A stretch of DNA of 64,000 nt, taken from sequence record NC_005260.1. One strand, written 5' to 3'. Positions 24,180 to 63,483 of this stretch are shown one piece after another. The notes under the pieces are model-generated. The model saw nothing but the letters and a program-made list of their open reading frames with translations. It did no database searches and was not told the DNA's origin. The position numbers and the translations under genes were made by a program. Position 1 is the first letter of the stretch, and every line of letters starts with the position of its first letter.

Positions 24180-24203
24180 AAGAGCCCGTTATGGGCTCTT
24201 TTT
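24180..24203 (+). terminator. Intrinsic terminator after gene 14
   Basis: AAGAGCCC/GGGCTCTT followed by TTT. Confidence 0.8.
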
Positions 24204-24794
24204 GTATGTGGAACACGACTCGCAAATTGAGTCGGATTTGATTCGACGCAACGAGAGATCGAAGTTGCCGTGTTGCTTGCAAGTGACTTGATATTGTGTG
24301 CTGTTACCAGCCCATCCAGAGACTTGACGAATAGCGTAGCCGTGTTTCTTTGCATAGTCGCTAGTGATCTGAATTGCAAGATGTTTCGGCTTTTTGTTTT
24401 GTATGCCAGTGCATACGGTACAAGTCGGCGCGTCGAACATGACCTTACCTACCTTCTCATAGAAAATGTGACCGTGTTCGCAAGTCAAAGCGAGTTGACT
24501 ATCACGATGCCACTCTTCTTTTTGAGAAGGAGGCATATGAAGTCCAAACGTCGTGCTTGACAAGTTGCGACGCACCAGGGTTTCTTTTTGTTGTGCATTG
24601 AACGGGTAGCGTCGATTACACCAACACATGAGTCGTTCAATCTGCTGAAATGTACCAGGGAACACCGGCTTACCTAGCCATGTTTTCTTTGAGCACTCTT
24701 CACAGACACAAGCATACACCTTGTTTCTAGCATTGTCAACACAAATTATACGTGTGATAGTGAAATGAGCAATTTTCATACCGATTCTGTTCAT
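24189..24794 (-). CDS. Cys/His-rich Zn-ribbon repeat protein (homing-endonuclease-like DNA-binding arm, no recognisable nuclease domain)
   Basis: CVCEEC, CWC, CEHGH, CTVC, CKQHG, CESC motifs; antisense within the late operon. Confidence 0.55.
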   Translation of the reverse strand: MNRIGMKIAHFTITRIICVDNARNKVYACVCEECSKKTWLGKPVFPGTFQQIERLMCWCNRRYPFNAQQKETLVRRNLSSTTFGLHMPPSQKEEWHRDSQLALTCEHGHIFYEKVGKVMFDAPTCTVCTGIQNKKPKHLAIQITSDYAKKHGYAIRQVSGWAGNSTQYQVTCKQHGNFDLSLRRIKSDSICESCSTYKKSP

Positions 24795-24806
24795 AATCTA
24801 TACTCT

Positions 24807-24931
24807 TCCAGAAAGTCGCGCCAGCGACTGCGAAGCTAACTTATTGATTTCATTAAAGAAGACAAAATAGATTCTCATTAAAGATCTATAAGAGATTTTA
24901 TTTTGTCTTTTTAGCGGCTGCGCCGCAGTCT
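24807..24931. repeat. Dispersed structured repeat, copy 1
   Basis: Core 24834-24911 is 76/78 identical to 63091-63168; 24912-24931 is 19/20 identical to 63175-63194; 11-bp inverted repeat AAGACAAAATA/TATTTTGTCTT. Confidence 0.95.
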
Positions 24932-24935
24932 TCGA

Positions 24936-24942
24936 CTAAATA
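24936..24942 (+). promoter_or_regulatory. Late promoter CTAAATA (gene 15)
   Basis: Upstream of AAGGAGG SD of gene 15. Confidence 0.75.
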
Positions 24943-24961: not shown

Positions 24962-25785
24962 ATGTTTGGGTATTTTTACAACAGCATTTCAAGACGCTAC
25001 ATTGTTCTAATGGGACAACTGTTCAACGGTATACAGGTAGCGCGTGAACGAGACGGCAAAGTATCGTATCAAAAAGTACCAATCACCTACGCTAGTAAAG
25101 AACGTTTTACCGCAAAACTCAACAGCGTTAACAGTAACATCGACGAAAACGGAGTTGCTCGCATCGAGACGATTTTGCCACGTATGAACTTGGAACTACT
25201 TGACATGGTATATAACCCTATGTTCAAGACCGGTGTCAACGTGAGATCGCAATCGCTAGGAGCGGGTGCGTCGGTATCTCGTAATAATCCGGTACCATAC
25301 AAGTATCTTTTTGGCTTGTCAATAGCTACCAGATTTGAGGATGACATGTTTCAAATTATTGAGCAAATCATTCCTTATTTTCAACCAAACTTCACAACCA
25401 AGATTACGGAACTTCACGATAGCTTAACACCGATAGATCGCGATATTCAGATCACAATACAAGGTGTTTCTATTTCAGAGGATCTTGAAGGAGCTCCTAC
25501 CGAGCGTCGTCGTATTCAGTGGGATATTACGTTCGAACTCGACGGCTGGCTATATCCTCCAATCGCGAACTTGAAAGGCGAAATTAAGACAATTTACATT
25601 GACTTTTTCTCCAACAAGACCGAGCTGAAATCTAGCGAAGATAATTTTGAGTCTGTTGACTTCGAGGTTGATCCTAGAACTGCGACTAAAGAAGAATGGG
25701 ATGGTAAATATATAGAGACAGCAAGCGAGAATATTCCTATTCCGCGAGATCCTAATAAACCGGGACCCAGAGGTAAAAAATTAAA

Positions 25786-46309: not shown

Positions 46310-46553
46310 TTCATTTTTAGCAGAAGCAGAGGAGAAAGCCCGCGTAGCAATCGAGGGCTTTCTCGATAAGGTATATAACTGCAAAACAGTGGACGGCGTT
46401 AGCGAACTAGAGAAATTCTATTCCAAACGCAAGAAGGAAGTTAACATTAGCGATTCCGAAGATATTCAGATTCGTGATGCACTGAGCGGGCGCAAGAAAG
46501 AGATCGAATCTCAAGACAGCGCGGAAGCAGAAGGCAAGAAAGTTGACCTATGA
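46296..46553 (+). CDS. uvsW.1: UvsW.1
   Basis: CKTVDGVSELEKFYSKR...IRDALSGRK matches T4 UvsW.1; TTG with GAGG SD. Confidence 0.85.
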   Translation: MKQFDSFLAEAEEKARVAIEGFLDKVYNCKTVDGVSELEKFYSKRKKEVNISDSEDIQIRDALSGRKKEIESQDSAEAEGKKVDL

Positions 46554-46582
46554 AAAAGGGAGCCGATGGCTCCCTTTTTTTT
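46553..46582. terminator. Bidirectional terminator after uvsW.1
   Basis: A5-GGGAGCC-GAT-GGCTCCC-T8. Confidence 0.9.
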
Positions 46583-49734: not shown

Positions 49735-51675
49735 ATGAGCATTAAAGAAATGTTGATGACCGAGGCATCGCCCGTTCCATACACTTCTACAAAAACAAAC
49801 AAAAACTCACTGTCCGATGATCTCTGGACTTTCTCAGTAGGTCCCAAAACTCTAGGTGTGAAGGCAAACAGTATGCGTCCAACCGGTTTGGCTACCTACA
49901 AGAAGTCAGCTCTACCGTCAGTATTTCACATGTTCGAAATCGAGTCAAGTGGTAAAACAACTCGAAACATCAAAACTATTCCGAAGCCGCTTAACGCGAT
50001 TGCTACCGTTGCTGAGATTATAGCAAACGAAACTCACGAAAACAAGATGAATGACGTTGTTATTTTCCGTGTTCCGTCTAGCATGGGCAAAGCCGAAAGC
50101 GTCAGTGCTATTGTATCTCGGTACGTGAAAAAGAGCGGTGTTCCTTTTGAGCCGAAGGGTGTTATCAACGTCGGTGAAAAGGGATTCAACTACATTTTCA
50201 TTACTCGCAAGGGTAAAAACCCAACTGTTGCTCAAGTTTTTGGCATCAAAGACGACGAAGTGGTTACACTTGCCGACTTGTCTGCACATGAAGCAACTGT
50301 GGAAAAGATTGTAGCAAAGATTGAGCCGATGATCAAGCGGCAAGTTCCGTCTATGATTAAAGTTTCTGAAATTGTTGGTGGTAGTGATGTTCCTGCTCCG
50401 GCTGCATCATTTATTAAAGACAATCCTCCTGTGTTGGGAAACATCGATGTAAAAAAGAAAACCGAGTTCAAAGTTGCGGATTTGTTTGCTAAGTATGAGC
50501 TTGATTCAAGCAACGTGTTTATGTCGTCAACTAACCCAACGGGTGATCGTCCGGCTAAAACAAGCAACATCGCGGGCATTATTTCCATGAACTCAATGGC
50601 AGATAGCGTAGAAGCGAAACAGTTTGCAACTCAGATCGGTGAAATGAATATCACGATGAAAGACTTTGTGGAAAACAGCGATAAAATGGCAAGTCTGAAA
50701 AAGTTCATTGAGGATGAAATCACCGCTAATGCTACCGAGGTTGAAAATATTATACAGTCGGTATTTACCCACGGTATCGTTGAATCGATTTCAGATAAGA
50801 TAACAGGAGCATATGCCAGCTTCCGTCCTACTTATATCGCAAAGGAAGATGCGAATATCATTGACCGTTATTGCGGCTCGGGTTATTCTCAAATCAACAA
50901 TCAGCTTATTCATGGAATTATTTCAGGAAACGCGACTGAGTGGATCAAGAAACTAGATGAAGCGTTTGATCGTTCTGGCGTTCGTGTGAATCCGGAACTA
51001 ACTGTGTATCGTGGTAGTAAGCTACCTAGCTCGGAAGTGTTTGATATCACGGTTGGCAAGCTTTTCCACTTTAGAGCGTTCGTTAGTACGTCATTGAATC
51101 CACGCACCGGATTTAGCTTTGGTGGCAACGATAAACACGACATCGCCAGAGTGTTGACCAACACACAACGAAGAGACAAGATTGATGATACCGAGCCGAT
51201 GCAGGATCCAATGACTGCTGCATTTATGATCAGTGGACTTGATAAGATTCCTGTTATTATTCCAGGTACTTATAGCCCATACGAAAGAGAATGCGAAGTT
51301 GTTCTACCTCGTGGTACCACTATTCGAATCGAAGATATGGCAACCGCGAACTTGAATAAGTTCACAAAAACACTTACCAATATTCTTTTCGTTTGTAAGG
51401 GTGTCGCTCCGTCGGAAGTAAGCATTAATGAAGTCATTTATGATGGCGATGAATTCATGAATACAGGAAGACTGGTAGAATTCTCTCAATTCTCAGATCG
51501 CGAAATTGAACTAACAGAAGCTAAGAAGAAGGCAGACAAAGCAGACAGCAAAATTAAAGCTGCTATGTTGTTCACTGCCGCTGTTAATAGCGAGTCATTC
51601 ACCAAGCAAATGAGTAAGAAAGAGAAAGAAGAAATGAAACGGATCGCAGACAAATACTGCGGGTCTATTATGTGA
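49735..51675 (+). CDS. alt: Alt-like ADP-ribosyltransferase
   Basis: YCGSGYSQIN, VYRG, FVSTS, ECEVVLPRG (R-S-ExE); late promoter; adjacent to gene 30. Confidence 0.88.
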   Translation: MSIKEMLMTEASPVPYTSTKTNKNSLSDDLWTFSVGPKTLGVKANSMRPTGLATYKKSALPSVFHMFEIESSGKTTRNIKTIPKPLNAIATVAEIIANETHENKMNDVVIFRVPSSMGKAESVSAIVSRYVKKSGVPFEPKGVINVGEKGFNYIFITRKGKNPTVAQVFGIKDDEVVTLADLSAHEATVEKIVAKIEPMIKRQVPSMIKVSEIVGGSDVPAPAASFIKDNPPVLGNIDVKKKTEFKVADLFAKYELDSSNVFMSSTNPTGDRPAKTSNIAGIISMNSMADSVEAKQFATQIGEMNITMKDFVENSDKMASLKKFIEDEITANATEVENIIQSVFTHGIVESISDKITGAYASFRPTYIAKEDANIIDRYCGSGYSQINNQLIHGIISGNATEWIKKLDEAFDRSGVRVNPELTVYRGSKLPSSEVFDITVGKLFHFRAFVSTSLNPRTGFSFGGNDKHDIARVLTNTQRRDKIDDTEPMQDPMTAAFMISGLDKIPVIIPGTYSPYERECEVVLPRGTTIRIEDMATANLNKFTKTLTNILFVCKGVAPSEVSINEVIYDGDEFMNTGRLVEFSQFSDREIELTEAKKKADKADSKIKAAMLFTAAVNSESFTKQMSKKEKEEMKRIADKYCGSIM

Positions 51676-51699
51676 AAAAGGGAGCCAATGGCTCCCTTT
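51675..51699. terminator. Bidirectional terminator alt/30
   Basis: A5-GGGAGCC-AAT-GGCTCCC-TTT. Confidence 0.85.
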
Positions 51700-51703
51700 A
51701 TTT

Positions 51704-53191
51704 TTATCCGAAAAACTTCTTGATTGTCTTTTCATCGAATACGTGTTCGACGTTATTTGCTTCGTCTTTGTCGATGCGGCGATGTTTGATAATCGGCAGG
51801 AAGAAACTTACTTCCTTCTTATTTTTCTTGTTGCGAGTCAAACCATTACACTCGATTTCCCAGATTGAGCCAATCAGTTCGCCGGCAATACTCATGAGAT
51901 ATTCACGATCCAGATAGTCGCGCTCATGCATGGGGATAACAACCCATTGCTTAGTCTTCTTATCTTTGACTTGAGTCGTATCGGTGAAACCGGAGCCACA
52001 GTTACAGCGAACTTTACCGTCGGCAGTCTCGATTGTGAATCCACCAACTTTGTTCGGATCTTTCTCATGTGGATACAAAGCGACCACTCGAACGTCAACA
52101 CGAATTTTTTCTTTGAACTTCACCTGATCTTTACTACGGGTATTCTTCCACATATTCAGACCACATTTCAGAATAATCCCTTCGTATCCAAGATCACGAT
52201 AACGCTGGTAAACCGCTTTGGCGTCGGCCAGTGTGCTTACCTTAGTCTGTTCTATGATCTCTACACGGAAGCTATCGCAACGCGATACAAACGCTTCCAG
52301 CATTTCCCGACGCTTCTCAAAGTAGAAGTCTTTCGGACAATCGCGCTGACCGTAATACACATCACGCGGGATAATATCCCACACTTGATACACAATGCTA
52401 TCAGCTTCATCGGCAGTGATCGAGTTTTTCAGGCTCTTGTTTACGATGCCGTTACCCTCTTCGCGATCTGATACATCTTCGGCTTTGTCAAAATCGTCGG
52501 AGTCGTCTTCCATTAGTGCGCTAAGACCAGTCGCAATTGCTTTTTGTTTGCGATATACCAACTCGCCGTCGATCACCCAGTTTTGCATACCAGATTTCTT
52601 GATCGCTTCTTTCAGCTTTTCCAAACCCATGTATTCGTTACCAGCTCGGGAATACATAGTGATAGAATCGGTATCGGCGTCGATATCAGTAAAGCAACGC
52701 GCTCCATCTGCTTTCAATTCCGCGATAGCATGACCGCGCTTGAGAATAGCCAGTGAAAGCTTGTCGTCTTCTGGCTGCGCGAGCATCTGCGGTTGTTTAG
52801 GACACAGATCTGCCCATACTTTATTCGCGATAGTTGCGCCAATGCCGATTTCGAGATCTCGGAACATAACTCGGCGAATGACGTCATAATCAAACGCATT
52901 ACCCATAGACAACGCTTTAGCGAGTTCAGCAACGGCAGTGCCGCCAGTGAGTGCGCGAGTTACCAGATGGGTATTCATGAATGCCAGAGTTGCAATGATA
53001 TCGGTCTTGTTCTGGAAATCAACAACAACTGGGAAAGTTTTCTTGTTGATGCCAAAGTTAATCTGCTTGTTATAAGCGAACTTAAAACAAGTGCTCAGAC
53101 CAGGAAAATCTTTGTGAGATTCCACGATTTGCTGCTTTTTGTTGGTTGAATCTTCCGCGGCAATCGCTTTCAAAATGTCGAATACAAACAT
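51704..53191 (-). CDS. 30: ATP-dependent DNA ligase gp30
   Basis: KADGAR motif I, IDGEL, VWDI, EGIILK; real start ATG 53191 (GAGGG SD). Confidence 0.97.
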   Translation of the reverse strand: MFVFDILKAIAAEDSTNKKQQIVESHKDFPGLSTCFKFAYNKQINFGINKKTFPVVVDFQNKTDIIATLAFMNTHLVTRALTGGTAVAELAKALSMGNAFDYDVIRRVMFRDLEIGIGATIANKVWADLCPKQPQMLAQPEDDKLSLAILKRGHAIAELKADGARCFTDIDADTDSITMYSRAGNEYMGLEKLKEAIKKSGMQNWVIDGELVYRKQKAIATGLSALMEDDSDDFDKAEDVSDREEGNGIVNKSLKNSITADEADSIVYQVWDIIPRDVYYGQRDCPKDFYFEKRREMLEAFVSRCDSFRVEIIEQTKVSTLADAKAVYQRYRDLGYEGIILKCGLNMWKNTRSKDQVKFKEKIRVDVRVVALYPHEKDPNKVGGFTIETADGKVRCNCGSGFTDTTQVKDKKTKQWVVIPMHERDYLDREYLMSIAGELIGSIWEIECNGLTRNKKNKKEVSFFLPIIKHRRIDKDEANNVEHVFDEKTIKKFFG

Positions 53192-62372: not shown

Positions 62373-62897
62373 TTATTGTTCGATGCAGTCACAATTCTGT
62401 AACTTTCTCATGTTCGCTTTGACTTTGGCAAGATACGTCTGGCCGTCTGTACCGCGATAGTTAAATCCAGCATTGTAAGACGCGACAATTTTACTCCACG
62501 ACTTTTTGCCGTGAACTTCTTGCCAGTATTTCAAGTTCATTTCGGTCATAGAAGCAGATAGCTCCATGTTCTCGATTAGACCCTTTTTCAGATCACGAAC
62601 TTGTTTAGCAGTCATCTTGTAACCAAGCTTCTTTTCCAGTCCGCGAACGGTGTATTTCAGATTGTTCTGGAACACGCCGTAATCACCCGAAACATTGTTT
62701 ACGAGATTTTCTCCAGCTTCACTCTCAGTAAGAGCGATGGCAGCAAAAGTCATGCCGTAGTCCATATTCTGACCCAGCTCATATGCGCGATTCACAACAT
62801 ACAACTGATCATCGTTCAATTCAAGACTAGACGGCGCAGCGTTGACACTAACACTACTAACTGCCAATAGCAGTGTGATACAGATTTTCTTTAACAT
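62373..62897 (-). CDS. vs.1: Secreted SLT-family lytic transglycosylase-like protein (T4 vs.1-like)
   Basis: Signal peptide; AIALTESEAG catalytic Glu, YGVFQN, ASYNAG. Confidence 0.8.
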   Translation of the reverse strand: MLKKICITLLLAVSSVSVNAAPSSLELNDDQLYVVNRAYELGQNMDYGMTFAAIALTESEAGENLVNNVSGDYGVFQNNLKYTVRGLEKKLGYKMTAKQVRDLKKGLIENMELSASMTEMNLKYWQEVHGKKSWSKIVASYNAGFNYRGTDGQTYLAKVKANMRKLQNCDCIEQ

Positions 62898-62981
62898 TTT
62901 CTTCCTCTATTTGTTTGGAATAGAAAGATACCTTTTTCTATGCACTTCCTTTGTTTGTGGGTTGTCGATGATTGCCTAGTG

Positions 62982-63009
62982 AGTATACACGATGAAATAG
63001 CTATGTCAA
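62982..63009 (-). promoter_or_regulatory. Early promoter TTGACA-N16-TATACT (vs.1-like)
   Basis: Between repeat copy 2 and vs.1. Confidence 0.75.
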
Positions 63010-63053
63010 CACGTATACCCGTTTTTAGCTCATTAGCTCATTAACTAATCAGC

Positions 63054-63194
63054 TCCAGAAATCGAACATCGTAAGATTGCGAGCGTAGCGAGCTAACTTA
63101 TTGATTTCATTGAAGAAGACAAAATAGATTCTCATTAAAGATCTATAAGACATTTTATTTTGTCTTTTCTACTCTAGCGGCTACGCCGCAGTCT
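63054..63194. repeat. Dispersed structured repeat, copy 2
   Basis: Same orientation as copy 1; shared TCCAGAAA, core and GCGGC-N3-GCCGC hairpin. Confidence 0.95.
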
Positions 63195-63483
63195 ATCGAC
63201 ATTCTTCTTCCTTGAGATCTTTTCGATAGTGGCACAGAATTTCGTTTTGCTTCTGAACGTAATTGAACACCTTTTCTAGCCAGATTCGGTATCTCACTGA
63301 GTCATCATAACTCATTGCTACATACGGCTTACCGTCGTCCAGAATCACTCTCCACTCAGGTCGATACGTCTCTACTACTTCTGGACGCGGTGGATGATAA
63401 ACAACAGGATTAATCTCTTGTTGATGTTGCGCACATCCACCCAACATCAGAGTTAGCCCAATCAAAGCATATTTCATTTGCAT
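63193..63483 (-). CDS. pseT.2: Outer-membrane spanin (Rz1-like)
   Basis: Lipobox LMLGGC followed by a Pro-rich segment; overlaps the i-spanin end. Confidence 0.85.
   Translation of the reverse strand: MQMKYALIGLTLMLGGCAQHQQEINPVVYHPPRPEVVETYRPEWRVILDDGKPYVAMSYDDSVRYRIWLEKVFNYVQKQNEILCHYRKDLKEEECR

Follow-up and report, generated by a model that had tools for sequence, protein, structure and literature searches.

A 64,000-nucleotide stretch of sequence record NC_005260 (the window), corresponding to genome positions 124001-188000 of the 233,234-bp Aeromonas phage Aeh1 (window position = genome position - 124,000), contains two copies, A and B, of a repeated intergenic element. It can securely be described as a conserved, structured, orientation-independent cis element occupying a few fixed, evenly spaced sites; equally secure is that it did not arise by recent duplication and is not an active mobile element. 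There is little doubt that both copies belong to a family of intergenic DNA elements, 115-180 bp long and specific to their clade, found in large T4-like Aeromonas phages. As to function, the reading tentatively favoured from the sequence evidence, with a probability put somewhat short of even, is that of a DNA-level, structure-forming element serving as an initiation zone for replication or recombination.

The repeat had been noticed in an earlier note made from the letters of the window, and the details given there proved largely accurate. Positions 24834-24911 and 63091-63168 are identical at 76 of 78 nucleotides (97% identity; repeat family D1), the GC block on the 3' side of the core agrees at 19 of 20 positions (TAGCGGCT[G/A]CGCCGCAGTCT), the common TCCAGAAA lies to the left of both copies, and the core carries the 11-bp inverted repeat AAGACAAAATA/TATTTTGTCTT. 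The coordinates of the mini-hairpin heptamers were likewise exact, with GCGAAGC (24830-36) and GCGTAGC (63083-89) on the left and GCTGCGC (24917-23; minus strand GCGCAGC) and GCTACGC (63180-86; minus strand GCGTAGC) on the right. A 30-nt core probe matched exactly two places in the 64-kb window, where shuffled sequences gave an expectation of 0. However, the count of two copies did not hold for the whole Aeh1 genome, in which local BLAST and a hidden Markov model (HMM) revealed eight copies at seven sites. These are c1 at genome 22.4 kb (minus strand, adjoining gene 47), c2 at 49.6 kb (plus), c3 at 90.0 kb (minus), the tandem pair c4 and c5 at 119.9 and 120.1 kb (minus, between gp54 and gp26), A (c6) at 148.9 kb (plus, between gp14 and gp15), B (c7) at 187.1 kb (plus, behind the o-spanin gene) and c8 at 230.8 kb (plus, adjoining ndd). 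No further, partial or solo-arm copies were found in this genome by a permissive search. According to BLASTN, the family is confined to 13 records, all of them Aeromonas T4-like phages of the genera Cinqassovirus, Angelvirus and Chrysonvirus; the phages compared are T4-like, have Aeromonas hosts and possess genomes of roughly 220-233 kb.

Alignment of 36 copies from five phages (Aeh1, Ah1, avDM12-TAAL, PX29 and phiAS5) gave the order of parts as left module, left arm, 18-nt spacer, AT-rich core hairpin, spacer of 0-50 nt and right arm. The unit of about 100 bp proposed earlier is a real element, but its true extent is larger, copy A spanning 24795-24937 and copy B 63041-63200. Both arms share one formula and constitute terminal inverted repeats: from outside to inside, on the strand with the outer 5' end, they consist of the hairpin H1, (T/C)GCG, the hairpin H2 and GCTA(A/G). 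The element is dyad-symmetric, matching its own reverse complement with an E value of ~1e-6, and the c2 copy of avDM12 even has a perfect 13-bp terminal inverted repeat (ATCGAAGATTGCG...CGCAATCTTCGAT). GNA hairpins do flank the core on each side, as had been claimed, but there are two hairpins per arm, H1 having been overlooked; the heptamers seen earlier represent H2 or its tip, and the right-hand one, although present, is just the tip of a 5-bp stem, GCGGC-loop-GCCGC. The fixed 18-nt spacer begins within GCTAAC, a motif invariant across all 26 distinct cores (core length 76 nt). In the core hairpin, the 11-bp repeat grows to 13 bp via one G-T pair and is followed by stems of 4 and 3 bp. The invariant unpaired motifs are TGCG, GCTAAC, TCAT(T/A)TAAG and TATAAG; the CATTRAAGA direct repeat described for the window copies, on the other hand, is not kept in the other copies, which have ACCTTAAGG. 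The central 80 nt of the copies are 60-76% AT, compared with 57% genome-wide.

In copy A, the left module (AATCTATACTCTTCCAGAAA; consensus ..ATAGTATACTCTTCCAGAAA), delimited by alignments, occupies 24795-24814 of the plus strand, and its minus strand supplies the GGAAGAG ribosome-binding region of a 201-aa open reading frame (ORF). Degenerate left modules (..CTCCAGAAA) lie beside most other copies, and most copies keep a decayed ribosome-binding site and an ATG-AAC start resembling that of the 201-aa ORF. The left arm, defined by DNA folding and the arm-hairpin census, comprises H1 (AGTCGC-GCCA-GCGACT, 24814-24829; in PX29 this stem carries the loop GTCA), followed at 24829-24840 by TGCG, H2 (GC-GAA-GC, 24830-36) and GCTAAC (24835-40). 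The adjoining spacer contains TAACTTATTGATT (24837-24849, plus strand), fitting the consensus YAANNNNTTGATW of integration host factor (IHF), which is a weak lead. The AT-rich core hairpin, supported by folding and covariation, extends over 24859-24909 with stems of 13, 4 and 3 bp, an 8-nt loop and a T run to 24912. The right arm, on the minus strand, consists of TTAGC and H2 (GCGGC-TGC-GCCGC, minus-strand loop GCA) at 24911-24926 and of H1 (AGTC-TTC-GACT, minus strand GTC-GAA-GAC) at 24927-24937. In copy B, the left module (TTAACTAATCAGCTCCAGAAA) lies at 63041-63061 and the left arm at 63068-63097, both on the plus strand, the latter with H1 (ATC-GTAA-GAT, 63068-77), TGCG, H2 (GCGAGC-GTA-GCGAGC with a tandem G-A mismatch, 63079-93) and GCTAAC (63092-97). 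The core hairpin of this copy, found with the probe, by folding and by covariation, spans 63116-63166 (plus), and the right arm on the minus strand (63174-63200) contains CTAGC, H2 (GCGGC-TAC-GCCGC, minus-strand loop GTA) and H1 (GTC-TATC-GAC, minus-strand loop GATA), the o-spanin stop codon (63193-95) falling within this H1. When folded as DNA, the arms of copy A form local hairpins (-24.2 kcal/mol, z -4.0) and those of copy B pair with each other around the core (-22.9 kcal/mol, z -3.5).

The element shows no coding potential and no promoter or canonical terminator of its own, in line with the earlier note. There is no ORF of at least 30 aa across copy A, the indels between copies are not multiples of three, and consensus scans detected neither a sigma-70 promoter nor a canonical terminator within 24795-24937 or 63041-63200. 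A search of Rfam 15 returned no family at the gathering score, the sole match being a chance one to snoR1 (20 bits against a threshold of 49). Two annotated small hypothetical genes, Aeh1p059 (genome 49489-49671, 60 aa) and Aeh1p349 (230599-230766, 55 aa), overlie c2 and c8, respectively; their protein similarity to other phages stems from the repeat itself and they are probably annotation artefacts.

The hairpins are under selection; compensatory changes, which the earlier note had proposed to look for, are seen in the stem of the core as well as in H1 and H2 of the arms. In the core stem, 95.6% of cells are paired, compared with ~55% (45-62%) when the partner is slid, and three pairs are altered on both sides (CG/GC, AU/GC and CG/UA). 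The H2 stem is found as GCGGC/GCCGC, GCGCC/GGCGC and GCGAC/GTCGC; the right-arm H2 of copy A is GCGAC..GTCGC in phiAS5, a compensatory change, and in the variant with the tandem G-A mismatch (GCGAGC..GCGAGC) the inner pair has changed from G-C to A-T in c4 and c8 (AC-GTA-GT). The variants of the H1 stem are ATC/GAT, GTC/GAC, GTGC/GCAC, GTGT/ACAC, GTCGC/GCGAC and GTGGC/GCCAC.

The loops were surveyed in a census of 129 arm hairpins, each read on the strand with the outer 5' end. G..A loops (GNA or GNNA) cap 98 of them, or 106 with register ties resolved (~80%), and the complementary T..C loop was encountered in 0 of the 129. The inward-facing GNA loops reported for the window thus generalise, G..A loops facing inward on both arms in a manner that fits d(C-GNA-G)-type DNA mini-hairpins. 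At least 13 distinct G..A loop sequences (GAA, GTA, GCA, GGA, GCAA, GTAA, GCCA, GTCA, GATA, GCTA, GTTA, GACA and GTCCA) are present on varying stems. That the loops vary only at the N position is correct for the two window copies but not for their relatives, in which ATA, AAA, TTT, TTTA and a few others occur as exceptions to the G..A type. C-GNA-G and C-GNNA-G are classic, very stable DNA mini-hairpins, and GNA triloops have no special stability in RNA. Since many or most of the tetraloops (GCCA, GTCA, GATA, GCTA) fall outside the RNA GNRA class and are of the DNA mini-hairpin type, the balance leans, short of proof, towards hairpins that would act as DNA-level structure.

The site occupancy was checked in the five phages of the Aeh1 clade, four of them at all seven sites and phiAS5 at six. 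Ah1 and avDM12-TAAL contain the same eight copies as Aeh1 with all seven sites filled, PX29 has seven of seven sites filled, and for phiAS5 six sites were seen directly and the seventh by count. As judged from the flanking genes, every copy of PX29 and phiAS5 is at a site orthologous to one of Aeh1, and no empty or new site was found among the five phages. The proteins flanking the sites are only 35-90% identical across genera, yet the hairpins and the invariant motifs are kept. The element is a genuine cis element, as the earlier note had supposed, and no chance repeat: its eight copies fill seven sites that are conserved across three or more genera, and a fourth genus has a divergent sister family. 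By the same evidence, a recent neutral duplication limited to two places, for which the 97% identity of the window copies might speak, is refuted by the eight copies, the sites kept in several genera and the compensatory changes, and has practically no probability left.

Two records gave a different first impression. An apparent empty B site in AsFcp_4 and AsFcp_1 was dismissed, since AsFcp_4, the one inspected (record MH791407, 'UNVERIFIED'), has a run of N in the B-site element that mimics a deletion in BLAST coverage. A ninth copy in avDM12-TAAL, considered as a transposition, turned out to be the duplicated end of record OP380604, which repeats the opening 474 nt with 465 bases identical and reflects assembly overlap or terminal redundancy. 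This phage is filed in GenBank as a Chrysonvirus; its elements and its 201-aa ORF (93% amino acid identity) are nearest to those of Aeh1, and its genome is mosaic, with a phiAS5-like c2 region in which the c2 copy is a phiAS5-type allele.

The alternative suggestion of a miniature inverted-repeat transposable element (MITE) or other mobile cassette was not upheld, there being no presence/absence polymorphism and no new site, with the same sites occupied across genera. No target-site duplication is visible in the alignments; without an empty site for comparison, the exact ends of the element cannot be fixed. Membership of the repetitive extragenic palindromic (REP) sequences did not stand either. 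REP sequences and the bacterial interspersed mosaic elements (BIMEs) associated with REP-associated tyrosine transposases (RAYT) have GT(A/G)G at the palindrome foot, many chromosomal copies and an associated RAYT gene; here GTAG is found solely at hairpin tips (a GTA loop plus G), no bacterial copies were found and no transposase lies nearby. A bacterial origin was rejected, as a pattern with 29 specified bases gave 0 copies in 185,579 bacterial species genomes or metagenome contigs; a shorter AT-rich pattern gave mostly chance matches in viral contigs. The only site abutting an indel is c1, which adjoins a 9.5-kb difference between Aeh1 and PX29. The Aeh1 segment concerned (genome 22534-32037, Aeh1p026-p030) comprises five genes, three of them for very large hypothetical proteins, and is missing from PX29, where gene 47 is directly followed by the c1 element and a-gt.4.

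Identity over the 76-nt core averages 90.6% within a genome, 77.7% between copies at the same site of another genus and 77.1% between copies at different sites of another genus. Because copies are alike within a genome and same-site copies across genera are no closer than different-site ones, the pattern is clearly that of dispersed repeats evolving in concert within a virulent phage, the likeness within a genome being maintained via gene conversion. The orientation relative to the neighbouring genes flips between phages at three sites, namely c8 (Aeh1 group versus PX29 and phiAS5), c2 (Aeh1, Ah1 and PX29 versus avDM12 and phiAS5) and B (Aeh1 clade versus ZPAH1, a phage of the genus Ishigurovirus).

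The gaps between the seven sites on the circular map of Aeh1 are 27.1, 40.4, 30.1, 28.8, 38.3, 43.6 and 24.9 kb, so that the sites lie ~33 kb apart. Compared with seven random points, such evenness has P values of 2.6e-4 (minimum gap), 9e-4 (maximum gap) and 3e-4 (standard deviation). As the spacing statistic was picked after the data had been seen, a replicate genome was sought. The gp54-gp26 gap of ZPAH1 contains a different-looking element, which is multicopy in ZPAH1, Aswh_1, CC2, AS-sw and others. Its six sites in ZPAH1, at 15.98, 67.28, 110.79, 134.42, 177.64 and 209.57 kb, are separated by gaps of 23.6-51.3 kb and are again evenly spaced (P 0.002-0.009). Three of them are orthologous to B, c4/5 and c8, and the gene order is rearranged, c4/5 lying next to c8 in ZPAH1, whereas 122 kb separate them in Aeh1. 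The ZPAH1 unit is composed of a GC module with AC-GAA-GT and CGCC-GGA-GGCG hairpins and an AT module, whose order and orientation vary by site. At the place of CATTAAAGA in the Aeh1 core, its AT module bears an exact match to the T4 late-promoter octamer TATAAATA. That the two families are homologous is no more than probable, the HMM of the Aeh1 family giving no match in ZPAH1; the case would rest on the common strings AGAGATTTTAT..TTTG and TCGCTACGCTC together with the three common sites.

Every copy lies in the interval from a gene's 3' end to the promoter of the gene that follows, and this promoter always adjoins the element. Early-type TTGACA..TATACT promoters are next to c1, c2 and B, and the late promoter CTAAATA is next to A, c3 and c4, overlapping the 3' half of the right-arm H1 at A and c3. 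CTAAATA, not the T4 octamer, is the late promoter of this clade, and it occurs 16 times on the plus and once on the minus strand of the window, mostly 25-40 nt upstream of late or structural genes. At copy A, which lies between divergent genes and upstream of both, the gp15 late promoter (24936-24942, plus strand, outside the repeat) precedes the ATG at 24962 by 26 nt. At copy B, the early-type promoter of the SLT-domain gene vs.1 (TTGACA-N16-TATACT, 62982-63009, minus strand) is downstream of the copy in the direction of transcription and outside the repeat, a layout that recurs at other sites. The statement that both copies sit where late and early units meet is consequently only partly true: A separates a reversed ORF from a late promoter, and B is flanked by two genes of the same strand and followed by an early-type promoter. 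At c1 and at two sites of ZPAH1, including gp54-gp26, canonical terminators are found immediately beyond the element, which argues against the element itself being relied on for termination. The ordinary form of a terminator in this genome is represented by the near-identical canonical bidirectional terminators at 46551-46582 and 51673-51704 (TGAAAAAGGGAGCC(G/A)ATGGCTCCCTTTTTTTT, family D4). The minus-strand leader of the vs.1/SLT-domain gene (leader 62898-62960, gene 62373-62897) is a separate feature of this region; about 60 nt of it are near-identical in Aeh1, Ah1, PX29 and AsFcp_4, with few differences in phiAS5. It is far better conserved than the flanking coding DNA, has a 7-bp hairpin (ATAGAAA..TTTCTAT, minus strand) just upstream of the ribosome-binding site, and may be a translational operator or other RNA element.

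A candidate trans-acting factor is encoded by the 201-aa Cys-rich ORF (24189-24794, minus strand), which is reversed between gp14 and gp15 and is kept at this position in all three genera. It has a CapR-type zinc-finger DNA-binding domain of homing-endonuclease origin (Pfam PF21817, E 3.6e-5, just above the cutoff), matches PHROG 20519 and shows similarity only to the DNA-binding middle of phage homing-endonuclease families; no nuclease domain was detected in it, and a sequence comparison yielded no relative of solved structure. Its close homologues are present in exactly the 13 element-bearing records. A strong sigma-70-like site (TTGACA-N17-TATGCT) is located within this ORF at 24739-24711. 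The IHF site WATCAANNNNTTR is perfect in all copies of the Aeh1 group and kept in ~5 of 12 copies of PX29 and phiAS5, the motif being common by chance (9 in the 64-kb window against 5.2 expected); the match itself is real but, with the motif so frequent and its conservation incomplete, gives a weak lead only.

On the favoured reading, the element would work at the DNA level. Negative supercoiling, for instance that behind an RNA polymerase departing from the adjoining promoter, would open the AT-rich core, whereupon the core and the arm hairpins with their G(N)NA caps would extrude on both strands and keep the region open. A sequence-specific factor, for which the CapR-like zinc-finger protein and, more weakly, host IHF are candidates, would read the invariant unpaired motifs, and the opened, branched DNA could offer an entry point for a T4-type helicase loader, primosome or recombination machinery. 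The seven sites would then represent sequence-defined replication or recombination initiation zones ~33 kb apart. This reading is preferred because the spacing is repeated in a rearranged genome, the site density is T4-like and the element is orientation-independent, and also because copy A is upstream of both neighbours, the loops are of DNA type and stand-alone terminators are adjacent.

Several points weigh against it. The origin proposed in the earlier note is still a hypothesis, although the even spacing has given it one new piece of support, and no step in GC or AT skew accompanies the seven sites (mean 0.00 against a random standard deviation of 0.06), though T4-type phages may lack such steps. 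The spacing statistic is post hoc, as said above, and Aeh1 and ZPAH1 share three orthologous sites, so that the two spacing tests are not fully independent. The adjoining promoters fire away from the element, whereas the transcript of T4 oriF or oriG enters the unwinding element. Furthermore, the plus-strand core is a good hairpin as RNA (-21 kcal/mol, z -6.1), is flanked by A/U tracts like a bidirectional terminator, and transcripts entering from either side would also carry G..A loops. The co-occurrence of ORF and element, finally, is confounded by phylogeny; ZPAH1 has the sister element and no such ORF between gp14 and gp15.

The absent skew signal, the promoters directed away and the quality of the core as an RNA hairpin make transcription punctuation the main rival, although an unlikely one. 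The core with its A/U tracts would here be a bidirectional terminator or attenuator, the GC arms would stabilise or process 3' ends, and the cassette would insulate transcription units, much as the promoter-early stem-loop (PeSL) does. The position of each copy between a gene 3' end and the next promoter suits this idea, as do the U-rich tails of both strands (the minus-strand core folding with -14.7 kcal/mol, z -4.5), the G-U pairs at several stem positions of the plus strand and the dyad symmetry, which gives G..A loops to transcripts from either side; PeSL stem-loops are, moreover, proven terminators in RB49 and phi1 (PMC2839356). Yet the scans revealed no canonical terminator, the stems have few G-C pairs, and separate canonical terminators adjoin the element at c1 and two ZPAH1 sites. 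Copy A is upstream of both divergent neighbours, and most tetraloops are not GNRA, GNA triloops not being specially stable in RNA. The element is present in just 7 of well over a hundred intergenic gaps, and neither their even spacing nor the invariant unpaired motifs would be explained. A set of binding sites for a phage regulator was considered as well, in which the CapR-like protein, perhaps with host IHF, would bind all seven sites and switch early and late promoters or act as an enhancer in the manner of the baculovirus homologous regions (hrs). CapR itself is a domesticated endonuclease domain and a proven sequence-specific repressor (PMC8096241), and the 201-aa ORF shares its domain, matches only the DNA-binding middle of homing endonucleases and accompanies the element in exactly 13 records. 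Homogenisation within a genome would be expected from co-evolution with one lineage-specific binding protein, the right-arm H1 overlaps the late promoter at A and c3, and the spacer fits the IHF consensus in all Aeh1 copies. This possibility is nevertheless judged improbable: the co-occurrence may be mere shared ancestry, ZPAH1 has the sister family without an ORF between gp14 and gp15, the IHF match is weak by number and by conservation, the compensatory arm changes point to intrastrand pairing that simple duplex binding does not need, and even spacing is not predicted.

The copies could also be selfish or relic repeats, that is, solo remnants of homing-endonuclease cassettes or MITE- or PeSL-like recombination linkers that are alike via gene conversion rather than function and mark the boundaries of exchangeable modules. 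Traces of such a history might be seen in the perfect 13-bp terminal inverted repeat of avDM12 c2, the decayed ribosome-binding site and ATG-AAC start of most copies, the position of c1 at the edge of the 9.5-kb indel, the phiAS5-type allele at avDM12 c2, the in-place orientation flips, the shuffled modules of ZPAH1 and the tandem duplication c4/c5. Against this, no empty or new site was met in the five Aeh1-clade phages (one phiAS5 site not directly seen), the two apparent exceptions were artefacts, no bacterial or metagenomic copies were found, and the hairpins and motifs are preserved by compensatory change across genera; even spacing that recurs in a rearranged genome is likewise unexpected for junk. 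An origin of this kind is considered quite improbable.

Taken one step further, the initiation-zone reading leads to a broader proposal that is possible though doubtful, namely that the large T4-like Aeromonas phages (Cinqassovirus, Angelvirus, Chrysonvirus and, in diverged form, Ishigurovirus) share a sequence-defined, hairpin-extruding set of initiation zones. Such a set would be the phage counterpart of the baculovirus hrs, spaced by selection, homogenised by gene conversion and possibly read by a domesticated homing-endonuclease DNA-binding protein. If true, a T4-type origin system united by one motif would be seen here for the first time. With a brief, easily recognised sequence at seven positions that are conserved and regularly spaced, and with a rearranged sister genome as a natural replicate, origin choice and spacing would become directly testable. 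If its role is transcriptional instead, the element would still be an unusually elaborate, orientation-independent punctuation cassette. No earlier description of it was found in the searchable literature, a coverage that leaves subscription journals outside.

Among known systems, the PeSL cassettes of the T4-type phages RB49/phi1, nt-1/KVP40 and PST/T4 are repeated intergenic composite motifs with a stem-loop, placed in the gap from a gene's end to the start of its neighbour, and serve as patches of recombination homology that mark module boundaries (PMC2839356, PMC4122927). In these respects they are similar to the present element. They differ in having an internal, near-consensus sigma-70 promoter with an AT-rich upstream region and a Shine-Dalgarno sequence, while here no internal promoter exists and the adjoining one is early or late; in their simple GGGG..CCCC-type stem-loop, compared with a dyad-symmetric multi-hairpin unit of 115-180 bp; and in their dozens of copies, which cluster in hyperplastic regions and are linked to differences in gene content among close relatives, compared with seven evenly spaced sites kept across genera. 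The stem-loop of PeSL terminates upstream transcription; the strong AU-rich hairpin with U-rich tails described here might do likewise, though it is not a canonical terminator and in some copies lies beside a separate one. PeSL cassettes are the closest described things, yet the element lacks two of their defining features, the internal promoter and the hyperplastic clustering.

The BIME-1/RIB (REP-IHF-REP), enterobacterial repetitive intergenic consensus (ERIC) and Neisseria Correia elements are similar in size (~100-150 bp), in their inverted GC-rich arms, in a possible central IHF site, and in their intergenic location in either orientation. Their copies number in the tens to hundreds and are polymorphic in presence or absence, and Correia elements have TA target duplications, in contrast to the seven fixed sites found here, with no polymorphism, no recognisable target duplication and no copies found in bacterial genomes; the resemblance is thus one of shape, not of behaviour. 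Mini-hairpins of the d(GCGNAGC) and d(C-GNNA-G) types are known from the complementary-strand origins of phiX174 and G4 and from the promoters of the N4 virion RNA polymerase. They share with the arms the short G-C stems, the C-G closing pair and the G..A loops, which prevail in both arms, on the strand able to fold into them once the duplex opens. However, they work on DNA of small phages or of N4 that is single-stranded or extruded by supercoiling; no N4-type polymerase was seen here, none having been looked for, and the loops of the element are not strictly GNA.

In baculoviruses, hrs are dispersed imperfect palindromes that have been proposed as enhancers and origins and are bound by a virus-encoded factor. 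As in the phages studied here, several dispersed imperfect palindromes are homogenised within a large double-stranded DNA virus genome; neither the virus lineage, the host nor the sequence is related, and hrs are tandem arrays of 30-bp palindromes rather than a single unit per site (with one tandem pair). Phage T4 itself, for decades the model of phage replication, has 5-7 dispersed origins, each reliant on a nearby promoter of varying class and without a known common motif, and the selection and spacing of oriA-oriG are still unclear (PMC3016281). The number of sites, the interval per site (24-34 kb in T4, 33 kb here), the neighbouring promoter of varying class and an AT-rich unwinding element comparable to the AT-rich core are similar. 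T4 differs in that its origins have no common motif and that its priming transcript enters the unwinding element, while the promoters described here point away. By analogy, the element of Aeh1 and its relatives may work most like the baculovirus hrs, or like T4 origins that bear a motif.

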